Of a stretch of 64,000 bases of DNA, positions 60,685 through 64,000 are shown in pieces; position 1 is the first letter of the stretch, and the number at the start of each line of letters is the position of its first letter. Made by a program: the position numbers and the translations under genes. The stretch is taken from assembly GCF_902713615.1 (NCBI RefSeq), contig NW_024055760.1, positions 62,001-126,000 on the forward strand, written 5' to 3'. The DNA is from Scyliorhinus canicula (Eukaryota). The notes under the pieces are model-generated. The model did not search any database, was not told where the DNA came from, and saw only the letters and a list, made by a program, of their open reading frames with translations.

Positions 60685-61484
60685 CAACAGCATTCCGCCT
60701 GTCACTGAGACCGGGCTGTCTGCAATCCCTCGCACCCCGCCCCGCGCTCTCTGTCCGTTCCTCCATCTCTCTGCCATTCCGCTGGATCTCTGCACCTTTC
60801 ACCTGCTCCCTTCACTTTCTTTCAGCTGTCTGCTCTTTTAGACGGCTCTCCGGCTTTCCCTGACATCTCTGCCTTTTCCTTTGTCTCTCCGCACTTTCCT
60901 CCATCTCGTTCTGCTTTGTCCGTGCGCTCTTCACTTTTCCCGTTCTTTGGAGTTTGCCCCGGTTCCTGGTGCTTTCCGCGGTTCTTTCAGTTTTTTGCTA
61001 TTATTATGCGCGGAATCTTACCGCTTATCGCCCACTCTTTGCAGAGTTTCTTCCCGATCACTGCAATTCTCTCAGCTCTCTGCACCTTCCACCGGCTCTC
61101 GGCACCTTTCCCCTGCTCTCTCCGCTTTCTTCCCGCTCTCTGTCCTTTGCGACGGCTCCCTGAGCTTTCCGCAGAATCTCTCCCCTGGCTCCCACATCTC
61201 TGTGCTTGCCCCCCTCCTCCCCACCACCCAGTGGCGTGCAGAGGTCTGGTGATGCCCGGGGCAAATCTTGATTGTGTGCCCCAAAGACTCAAGTATAAGG
61301 CCTAATATACTGAGAAATATTATGAGAAAGGAAAACTTTTTGAATATAACTTCCCGTACCAGCCTCCTAAACAGGCGCTGGAATGTGGCGACTAGGGGCT
61401 TTTCACAGTAACTTCAGTGAAGCCTACTTGTGACAATAAGTGATTTTCATTTCAGTGTAGAGGATGTTCTAAACCGCTGCGTGC

Positions 61485-62400
61485 AGAGAGCAGTGAATGG
61501 TCTCTCCCCAGTGTGAACTCGCTGGTGTCTCAGCAGTTGGGATGAATTTTTTTTTAAAATTTAGATTACCCAATTATTTTTTCCAATTAAGGGGCAATTT
61601 AGTGTGGCCAATCCACCTACTCTGCACATTTTTGGGTTGTGGGGGCGAAACCCACACAGACACGGGGAGAATGTGCAAACTCCACACAGACAGTGACCCA
61701 GGGCCGGGATTCGAACCTGGGACCTCAGCGCCGTGAGGCAGTTGTGCTAACCACTAGGCCACCGTGCTACCCTGCAGTTGGGACGAATGACTAAATCCCT
61801 CACCACACAGAGGGCAGGTCAATGGCTTCTCACCTGTATGAACTCACTGATGTCTCAGCAGGATGGATGGCTGAGTGAATCCCCTCCCACACACACTGCA
61901 GGTGAACGGCCTCTTCCCGGAGTGAACTCTCTGGTGTGTCAGCAGGTTGGTTATAGATAGAACAGTGCAGCACAGAACAGGCCCTTCGGCCCTCAATATT
62001 GTGCGGAGCAATGATCACCCCACTCAAACCCACGTATCCACCCTATACCCGTAACCCCCAACCTTACTTTTTAGGACACTATGGACAATTTAGCATGGCC
62101 AATCCACCTAACCCGCACATCTTTGGACTGTGGGAGGAAACCGGAGCACCCGGAGGAAACCCATGCACATACGGGGAGGACGTGCAGACTCCACACAGAC
62201 AGTGACCCAGCTGGGAATCGAACCTGGGACCCTGGAGCTGTGAAGCATTTATGCGAACCACCATGCTACCGAGCTGCCTAATTGAGAGAATTAGAGAATT
62301 GAGAGAATCTCTTCCCACACACAGAGCAGGTGAACAGCCTCTCCCCAGAGTGAACTCGCTGGTGTGTCAGCAGTTGGGGTGAATGACTGAATCCCTAATC
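61485..62400 (-). pseudogene. ZNF finger-array fragments inside the hAT cargo, split by family C (61548-61773) and family A (61953-62278) SINEs
   Basis: ctctccccagtgtgaactcgctggtgt finger signatures; 15-bp TSD gcagttggga(t/c)gaat around the family C copy. Confidence 0.8.
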
Positions 62401-62558
62401 ACACTCAGAACTGAGGGAGTGCTGCACTGTCAGAACAGCCTTCTTTTAAATAAGTTGTTAAACTGAGGCTCTGTCTGTCCCTATTAGGTGGATGTTGAAG
62501 ATCCCACAGCCACTATTTTGAAGAAGAGCAGGGGAGTTACCCCCGTGTCCTGGTCAAT

Positions 62559-63015
62559 ACTAGGGGCTTTTCACAGTAACTTCATTTGAAGCCTACTTAT
62601 GAAATGAAAATCAGGGCAGCACGGTGGCCTAGTGGTTAGCACAACCGCCTCACGGCGCTGAGGTCCCAGGTTCGATCCCGGCTCTGGGTCACTGTCCGTG
62701 TGGAGTTTGCACATTCTCCCCGTGTCTGCGTGGATTTCGCCCCCACAACCCAAAAATGTGCAGAGTAGGTGGATTGGACACGCTAAATTGCCCCTTAATT
62801 GGAAAAAATAATTGGGTAATCTAAATTTAAAAAAAAATGAAATGAAAATTGCTTATTGTCACATTCCGCATTCGCCACATTCCAGCGCCTGTTTGGGGTA
62901 ACTGTTACAGGAATCGAATCGTGCTGCTGGCTTGCCTTGGTCTGCTTTCAAAGCCAGCAATGTAGCCCTGTGCTAAACAGCCCCTGACAATAAGCGATTT
63001 TCATTTCATTTCATG
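62559..63015. mobile_element. three nested SINEs: D(+) containing D(-) containing C(+)
   Basis: D(+) split at gaagcctactt | gacaataagc; C copy flanked by TSD atgaaatgaaaat (62599-62611, 62837-62849). Confidence 0.7.
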
Positions 63016-63195
63016 TGTCAAACTGAGGGAGCAAAGGATGTCAATATTTTTAAGAGAGAGACCTGGGCCAAGCTTTCCAGAGTCTGAACCCTCCCTGGAT
63101 TCACTTCCTTTCCCTTCAGTTGCTGCAAATGACCAATTGATGGTCAGAATGAATAAAGAAATGGAAAGGGGGAGAAAAGAAAGTGTTTTACTCAC

Positions 63196-63420
63196 AGATG
63201 TTGGAGACAGGAGGAAGATTCCTTCGGTGTGAAAGCTCAATTATCACTCACACAAAGCCCGCGCTCTGATTGGGTGGAGAACCACAGTCCCTCCAGTCCT
63301 CAATCTTTTTTCATTGGTTAACATCTCAGCACGCAGATCAGGGGGCGGGACCTTTCCCTGCATGTGAGGAGCTCCCCCTCCCTTGGACATGCGCAGTCCC
63401 GGGCCGCCCGCCCGCGTGGC
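63196..63420 (-). promoter_or_regulatory. captured ZNF-type promoter and ATG-less exon 1 with donor GTGAGT at 63195-63190
   Basis: GATTGG..TGGAG.ACC...CCCTCCAG...ATTGG module as at 47950; GGGGCGGGA GC box; CATGCGCAGT NRF1-type site. Confidence 0.6.
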
Positions 63421-64000
63421 AGATAGAGCGGTTTCCCCACCGCGGGGGAGTCTGGGAGCTCAGTCACCTCACCCTGACACAAGGTACATGTCGGTAGTCA
63501 CTGGATTTGATTGTGACGCCCCCACCTTAGCAAAACAATTTGTTAAATTCAGGTGGAAAAATTTAGGCATCTGCGTGACATTGGGGAGAGCAATAGCCTC
63601 TGATTGATGCCCCCATCCAATGGTTGCCCGGGGCCAACGCACCGTCGCCCCCCCCCCCCCTCTGCACGCCACTGCCACCACCCCCTTTCCTGCCCTTTCC
63701 CTGCCTTCTTGTTCTTTCTCTCGGTTCCAGCGCTTTCTCCCGGCTCAGGCGCTTTCTCCCGACTCTCTGAACTATCCCCCGGCTCTCCCCAATCCCGGGC
63801 CAACAGACATATCTGGGCACCTCTCGTGATCATGTCTCGCCCTAATTCTCTCTTTCTCTCTCGTTCCAGTCATTCCCTCGCTGATTTAGGGACCGTGAAT
63901 AAGAGAGAATGAAGAGAGTGAGCGAGTAACTGAGTGAGGGTAGGAGAGTGAGTGCGGGTGAGTGAGTAACTGAGTGAGGGTAGGAGAGTAACTGCAGGTG

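Follow-up and report, generated by a model that had tools for sequence, protein, structure and literature searches.

That cut-and-paste transposons capture genes is well established for plants, where the Pack-MULE and Pack-CACTA elements have been reviewed (PMC8903248), whereas in animals such capture is known almost only from single copies (PMC8277862). The survey of Tan et al. 2021 (Nat Commun 12:4280, PMC8277862) covered 100 animal genomes and reported 370 Pack-TIRs (TIR, terminal inverted repeat), of which 208 were hAT. Multicopy cases among the 370 numbered just four, and the one shown as an example has about three copies; Pack-hAT-N8_XT of Xenopus tropicalis provides an animal Pack-hAT example. 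Sharks are not named in the text of that survey, and our literature searches returned no description of a shark family of the kind presented here. In this study, we analysed a 64,000-nucleotide stretch of the shark Scyliorhinus canicula (hereafter the window; contig NW_024055760.1, here C368:62001-126000, in a genome of 4.22 Gb), in which a DNA transposon lies in the J-C intron of an immunoglobulin M (IgM) gene. A first-pass annotation, made from the sequence alone, had proposed a Pack-hAT that carries the promoter, exon 1 and fingers of a zinc finger (ZNF) gene. Our findings support the Pack-hAT reading at the level of sequence comparison: very probably the element is a copy of a transposase-less hAT subfamily whose host ZNF cargo was captured once, in a founder, and which later jumped into the IgM intron. 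Positions below are those of the window unless a contig is named.

Boundaries of the Element and Its Insertion Site

The element is 2446 bp long and is bounded by perfect 16-bp inverted ends, CAGTGGCGTGCAGAGG at 61229-61244 on one side and the exact reverse complement at 63659-63674 on the other, and by an 8-bp target site duplication, CCACCACC, identical at 61221-61228 and 63675-63682. Within the window the two element ends are the sole matches to CAGTGGCGTGCAGAGG, even with up to 3 mismatches allowed. Genome-wide the 16-mer occurs 1053 times in forward and 1089 times in reverse orientation, and its reversed control 0 times; because the motif recurs about 1050 times per orientation against a control of 0, the inverted ends are not a product of chance. 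A subterminal motif, (T)GCCCGGGGC, stands in direct orientation at 61253-61262 and 63625-63634, and copies throughout the family have it, at base 26 counted from one end and at 45-57 counted from the opposite one. None of the open frames within the element matched a transposase family in a protein-family search. The ends, duplication, paired subterminal motif and lack of a transposase described in the first-pass annotation were therefore all recovered as described. Other copies with the same end pair were also found, as that annotation had anticipated: among the 30 fetched, 26 have perfect 8-bp duplications, every one of a different sequence, and in the remaining four the duplication is off by one base or shifted by one base. 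An 8-bp duplication, short inverted ends starting CAG and ends in common with a transposase-encoding element place the element among the hATs. MITEs (miniature inverted-repeat transposable elements) usually stay below ~800 bp and lack recognisable gene content; the unit seen here, 1.62 kb without its nested short interspersed elements (SINEs) and with gene fragments inside, falls outside that class.

The insertion site itself is preserved in related loci. The left flank has seven paralogs on other contigs, at 94-97% identity, and in six paralogous IgM clusters the left and right flanks abut, just as had been expected from the way the flanks rejoin, in an empty site of the predicted form, CCTCCTCC-CCACCACC-CCCTTTCCTGCC, with a single 8-mer. 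Three of these six sites carry the exact CCACCACC and three carry CCACCACT; the seventh paralog has a small deletion there. The element thus arrived by cut-and-paste insertion with duplication of 8 bp.

A Predicted Autonomous Partner

Numerous end pairs in the genome are ~3.7 kb apart and enclose a long frame of 685-734 amino acids on the strand opposite to the window orientation. This frame matches DUF4371 (6.8e-16) and an adjoining frame matches Dimer_Tnp_hAT, PF05699 (5.8e-13), and on these domain matches the ~3.7-kb hAT element is the predicted autonomous partner of the window element, whose existence had been foreseen; a sequence search of the PDB with the transposase gave no match. The window element and the 3.7-kb element have in common only the first 120 bp and the last ~58 bp, their interiors being unrelated, and because only the ends are common the window element depends on a transposase supplied in trans.

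All 3.7-kb copies sampled have one and the same nested SINE, close to the end that lies upstream of the transposase gene (L001:3587-3812, with matching positions in L002-L005 and L008), and a master element therefore spread with the SINE on board. A 5.7-kb copy of the same hAT family (L012, C1:60051977-60058064) contains a nested long interspersed element (LINE) with reverse-transcriptase frames. The interiors of other subfamilies, L006, L010 and L011, yielded nothing interpretable.

One Cargo in a Dispersed Subfamily

Apart from three blocks, the window element is colinear with copies of 1.62 kb and belongs to this SINE-free-sized subfamily, which is young, lacks a transposase and numbers about 130-210 copies. 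A 20-mer from the cargo (63130-63149) occurs 213 times in the genome at up to 1 mismatch, and an internal junction (62996-63032) 130 times at up to 2 mismatches, each with a control of 0; both sets of occurrences are scattered across all large contigs. Scored genome matches to 63020-63640 (n=40) are without exception full length and 95-100% identical. In a sample drawn from the best BLAST matches, and hence biased towards similar copies, SINE-free copies (n=18) differ by 0.6-1.4% from the majority sequence and by 1.8% on average between pairs; the window copy stands at 1.5% from the majority, its nearest relatives being two copies that bear SINE2, one of its three nested SINEs. The target duplications of these 20 fetched copies (18 SINE-free and two with SINE2) all differ, 17 of them being perfect. 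Since the subfamily is multicopy with distinct duplications, it transposed after the capture, and since the cargo is the same across the subfamily, the capture took place in the founder and not at the IgM site. Capture, in short, preceded amplification. The first-pass annotation had allowed, as a caveat, for late entry of the cargo into a resident short hAT, a MITE, already inserted at the IgM locus, a version to which the low complexity of the target duplication and the presence of three later insertions inside the element would lend some colour. It is refuted, and we give it virtually no credence: the same cargo, with the same internal breakpoints, sits in ~130-210 dispersed copies that have the same ends and differing duplications, and the only later additions are the SINEs, with duplications of their own.

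The three nested SINEs account for 794 of the 2446 bp. The blocks that SINE-free relatives lack are 61544-61784, 61953-62296 and 62613-62850, the first and third including target duplications. The SINE label was given on the basis of a tRNA-like head, an A-rich tail, duplications of 12-15 bp and an abundance of copies in the window; a search of the nested SINEs with ARAGORN returned no tRNA. The junction of SINE2, for which no clean target duplication could be identified, occurs at only 4 genome loci, and the C6 and C17 copies have their own flanks; as SINE2 is common to independently flanked copies, the element was still mobile after gaining it. SINE2 arrived with the element, and SINE1 and SINE3 inserted in place after its arrival.

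Origin of the Cargo in a C17 Zinc Finger Cluster

The interior between the hAT ends measures 1.44 kb without SINEs. In segment A, a MITE-like piece (61351-61452) lies within the ZNF 3' flank, and SINE1 and SINE2 interrupt the segment; once SINEs are removed, the minus strand of 61455-62405 reads as a single frame of Krüppel-type fingers with two in-frame stops, ECD*GF and HQ*VH (asterisks denote stops). HQ*VH is found in all three other copies translated, and the ECD* stop varies among copies (ECDY in L031). Exon 1 and its splice donor are read on the minus strand, towards the fingers, and the transcription start, or 5' limit of exon 1, probably lies at ~63260. The junction with host intron at 63012/63013 is the hallmark of the subfamily (130 matches). 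Promoter homology reaches 63516 in two host loci, and segment D (63517-63616) has no match among the host loci compared. C2H2 fingers together with an exon 1 that keeps its donor constitute the exon and coding content expected of a Pack-type element.

The closest host counterparts of the 5' part of the cargo form a promoter subtype of ~180 loci, nearly all at C17:111-127 Mb. Compared with the 5' regions of C17 ZNF genes, 63013-63459 is 78-85% identical overall and ~93% identical over 63013-63300, splice donor included; the host loci have open reading frames (ORFs) of 9-15 fingers at a distance of 0.5-1.8 kb from the promoter and are frequently arranged as gene pairs in head-to-head orientation, and none of the 15 examined has hAT ends. 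In the sampled C17 loci this subtype adjoins C2H2 ZNF ORFs. These end-less homologs bear out the earlier statement that the promoter, non-coding exon, intron and finger fragments are host-derived. To the left of 63013 the host paralogs stay alike, whereas the element changes to MITE-like sequence. That MITE-like piece and its junction also occur in two end-less loci of the cluster, L076 and L077. L077 (C17:125.18 Mb) is 91.6% identical to the element over 663 aligned bp. L076 (C17:124.83 Mb) is 85-90% identical to it, and its fingers (C17:124831201-124831530) match the cargo fingers at 87.5% identity and share with them the unusual stop in the first partial finger; the locus holds both cargo pieces in the order and orientation of the element, 3.1 kb apart against ~150 bp in the element. 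In a genome search with the L076 fingers, the matches of two host paralogs extend over the query to its end; transposon copies rank next, and all of them end at the breakpoint.

Because the host likeness continues past the breakpoints and the transposon copies end there, the direction of transfer was from gene to transposon. The opposite course, in which the promoters and fingers of the ZNF cluster descend from the transposon, could appeal to the sheer number of loci with the shared promoter subtype (~180) and to the lack of a donor at or above 97% identity, and we nonetheless hold it to be very improbable: the host loci stand in tandem at C17:111-127 Mb and are not dispersed, inverted ends are absent from all 15 host loci examined, host paralogs remain alike past both cargo breakpoints where the element is unrelated, and the host fingers sit in full ORFs of 9-15 fingers. 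Given the layout of L076 and the shared stop, the simplest account is a single source gene represented without its middle, and this one gene appears to have supplied both main cargo pieces. A patchwork of separate captures from different loci is unlikely, if still worth serious consideration, given that segments B and D have no identified source and that unrelated repeat debris separates the fingers from the 5' region in the element; it has to contend with L076, in which the two main pieces follow each other in the element's order and orientation and which shares the unusual finger stop codon and the intronic MITE-like insertion, such that a single capture event, accompanied by an internal deletion or a template jump, is simpler.

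As to the donor locus that the first-pass annotation had hoped to find, the donor family is identified (the C17 cluster, with L076 and L077) and the exact donor is not, the best candidates reaching 85-91%. Six further host loci are at most 83-85% identical overall, and a 57-mer joining host-left to element-right sequence, used as a hybrid probe, had 2 mismatches in its best match and pointed to no donor. L076 is itself damaged within L076:1-460 (C17:124831200-124831659), its finger array having both a frameshift and a stop (ECG*GF), and the donor lineage may already have been a pseudogene.

A further proposal, that the cargo promoter is paralogous to the promoters at 3.4 and 47.9 kb of the window, was not borne out. 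Those two are related to each other and have only short motifs in common with the element, namely GATTGGnTGGAGnACCA, CCCTCCAGT, ATTGG and GTGAGG; the alignment score (BLAST/Smith-Waterman) was 27, equal to the best of 200 random window pieces, which leaves them as distant relatives only. Their shared module (3100-3545 and 47660-48065) comprises a YY1-like AAGATGGCGG, CTGCGCATGC, GATTGGTTGGAGGACCAG and CCAAT boxes. As a probe, GATTGGTTGGAGGACCAG has 1319 genome occurrences, and almost every one falls either on unplaced scaffolds or within the distal 30 Mb of C17; given that sampled C17 loci of the closer subtype adjoin C2H2 ZNF ORFs, a very large expansion of ZNF genes with one shared promoter module is suggested. 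Of 20 sampled GATTGGTTGGAGGACCAG loci, 2 aligned strongly to the element, and it was from these two that the subtype of ~180 loci was defined. In sequencing runs of a second organism, 14-22% of sampled words of 62838-63640 were present, and a related species may carry this hAT family or the host promoters.

Transcription of the Captured Region

Reads of three oligo-dT RNA libraries of unspecified tissue (~1.3-1.5 billion letters each) were mapped on the SINE-free copy L031, the depth being summed over all copies within a 93% likeness cut. Depth was high only over parts that are common to other repeats and to ZNF genes generally; it was 0-5 over the captured exon 1 and 0-3.5 over the captured promoter, where some bins were zero, and no splice joint from the exon 1 donor was among the joints listed for the three libraries. 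It has to be asked whether there is activity from the captured cassette of promoter, exon 1 and donor, which would then provide new first exons for neighbouring genes, here in the form of sterile transcripts spliced to Cmu1, the first exon of the IgM constant region. The promoter, exon 1 and GTGAGT donor are indeed conserved relative to the host genes, and Cmu1, 3.5 kb beyond the donor, has the same direction. Set against this conservation and orientation, a depth of 0-5 over exon 1 and promoter in three libraries, summed over the mapping copies, and the lack of a listed joint from the donor make such activity quite improbable.

Proposed Origin and Its Weak Points

Overall, the founder very probably acquired 1.44 kb of host DNA once, from a member of the tandem C2H2 ZNF cluster of C17. 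This cargo would represent the last fingers and 3' flank of the gene plus its promoter, exon 1, donor and the start of intron 1, with the ~3 kb between these parts absent from the element. Template switching during excision-gap repair would be the likely route, a step that we infer; capture by template switching or abortive gap repair is a model familiar from the hAT and Ds literature. An autonomous hAT transposase (DUF4371 plus dimerisation domain) must then have mobilised the subfamily in trans, making the CCACCACC duplication at the present site. A SINE2-bearing derivative would have jumped into the J-Cmu intron after divergence from at least six empty-site paralogs, and this jump and two later SINE insertions would precede the event that created a copy 98-99% identical to the window region on contig C428.

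Several points weigh against this account. No host locus with the identity of at least 97% expected of a recent donor was found, the best being 85-91%; the donor may be unsampled, lost or diverged, or the capture may be much older than the burst of copies. The capture mechanism is deduced from breakpoints only. As segments B (62411-62558) and D (63517-63616) have no identified source, the cargo may have been acquired in more than one step. The transposase frame is broken in all five sampled 3.7-kb copies, and these include no intact source of transposase. The copy counts (130-213) are based on short motifs. Finally, the truncated fingers with their stops and a promoter nearly without RNA reads lend weak support to the view that the cargo is inert, a view limited by the unspecified tissues and by read mapping over many copies.

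Feature Layout and History of the IgM Locus

The coordinates of the element, its parts and the neighbouring IgM exons are collected in table 1. As had been stated at the outset, the element lies in the J-C intron, between JH (~74.0 kb) and Cmu1 (59663); this J-Cmu intron is ~14.3 kb long, and the element sits 1.57 kb 5' of Cmu1. Over 44-73 kb of the window, contig C428 is colinear and 98-99% identical, and it has a filled site with all three SINEs. Empty paralogs on the one hand and a filled C428 on the other set the order of events as cluster divergence, hAT insertion, insertion of SINE1 and SINE3, and the split of C368 and C428, the last being either a duplication or two haplotypes. The insertion is probably neutral for the IgM gene, and it is useful as a marker for ordering IgM cluster duplications.

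Table 1. Features of the transposon and of the surrounding IgM locus (window positions; strand "." where none is assigned)
Feature	Position	Strand	Evidence or remark
Left target site duplication CCACCACC	61221..61228	.	8-mer single in paralogous empty sites
5' terminal inverted repeat CAGTGGCGTGCAGAGG	61229..61244	+	Genome motif count
120-bp hAT end	61229..61348	+	98% identical to 3.7-kb element, the predicted autonomous partner; includes GCCCGGGGC at 61254-61262
Segment A: ZNF 3' flank, then 3 complete and 2 partial C2H2 fingers	61349..62410	-	zf-C2H2, E=1.8e-14
SINE1, tRNA-derived	61548..61773	-	Limited to window locus and C428 duplicate; 15-bp duplication GCAGTTGGGAYGAAT (61533-61547, 61774-61788)
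SINE2, SINE-family repeat of ~340 bp	61953..62296	.	Same position in independent C6 and C17 copies
Segment B: fragment of another dispersed repeat	62411..62558	.	74% identical to window 31886-32028
MITE-like debris, interrupted by SINE3	62559..63012	.	Found in intron 1 of donor-lineage genes
SINE3, tRNA-derived	62612..62836	+	Limited to window locus and C428; duplication ATGAAATGAAAAT (62599-62611, 62837-62849)
First ~190 bp of captured ZNF intron 1	63013..63203	-	~93-95% identical to host paralogs
Captured non-coding exon 1	63204..63260	-	Splice donor CATCT/GTGAGT at 63204/63203, kept in host loci L068 and L069; 5' limit probable
Captured ZNF promoter region	63261..63459	-	CCAAT boxes, GC box, GATTGGGTGGAGAACCA
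Segment D, ~100 bp	63517..63616	.	Between promoter homology and hAT 3' end
58-bp hAT 3' end	63617..63674	+	Common to predicted autonomous element; GCCCGGGGC at 63626-63634, poly-C run, 3' inverted repeat
Right target site duplication CCACCACC	63675..63682	.	8-mer single in paralogous empty sites
Cmu1 exon	59310..59663	-	Same direction as captured promoter and exon 1
Cmu2, Cmu3 and Cmu4 exons	58808-59161, 57897-58220, 55483-55968	-	IgM constant region
JH; D segments; VH	~74.0 kb; 74.45 and 74.8 kb; 75.0-75.3 kb		IgM cluster; window-equivalent coordinates

The same intron holds a degenerate tandem repeat of ~6 kb with GAGTGAGTAACTGAGTGAGGGTAGGAGAGT-like units, which runs from window 63900-64000 to ~70 kb (L014) and is also present in paralogous IgM clusters at 65-89% identity. 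A short tandem array with a period of ~29 bp, visible as staggered self-matches, occupies 60510-60692, upstream of the insertion site, and its copy number differs among paralogous IgM clusters. A stretch of 1.7 kb (52312-54052), located in a LINE reverse-transcriptase frame (52410-54059, minus strand), is missing from the otherwise 98-99% identical region of C428.

Comparison with Known Pack Elements

The shark element offers a natural case both for the origin of capture, with its breakpoints defined, and for the co-option of dispersed promoter and exon cassettes. We put forward, as a doubtful and frankly speculative proposal, that this is the most amplified gene-carrying DNA transposon yet seen in a vertebrate, and that some copies act as alternative first exons or antisense regulators, the one described here through sterile C-mu transcripts. 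If this were true, ~200 copies of a cassette of ZNF promoter, exon 1 and splice donor, along with finger fragments, would be scattered genome-wide, and the IgM copy could drive sterile C-mu transcripts in lymphoid tissue.

Non-autonomous hAT elements of the maize Ds1 type offer one parallel, in that their likeness to the autonomous element is confined to the terminal ~100 bp, filler DNA making up the interior; abortive gap repair is the model for the origin of such elements. Unlike in the Ds1 type, the filler of the shark element can be traced to a specific host gene family. Plant Pack-MULEs and Pack-CACTA elements resemble it as transposase-less TIR elements that capture and amplify gene fragments, often with promoters or exons, yet they belong to different superfamilies, with duplications of 9-11 bp or 3 bp, and they are often transcribed, whereas the shark element is without RNA support. 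The nearest relatives in kind are the animal Pack-TIRs, and Pack-hATs in particular: like these, the shark element is a transposase-less hAT with inverted ends, 8-bp duplications and a host-gene interior that includes 5' untranslated or promoter-proximal sequence, and, as in an animal Pack-hAT, distinct target duplications prove movement after the capture. It fits every feature of the animal Pack-TIR definition except an unambiguous parent. Unlike the animal Pack-TIRs described, it carries two separated parts of one gene together with repeat debris, and its family, at ~130-210 copies, is larger by about two orders of magnitude. The shark family shows that amplification of a captured host fragment by a vertebrate hAT can reach a plant-like scale.

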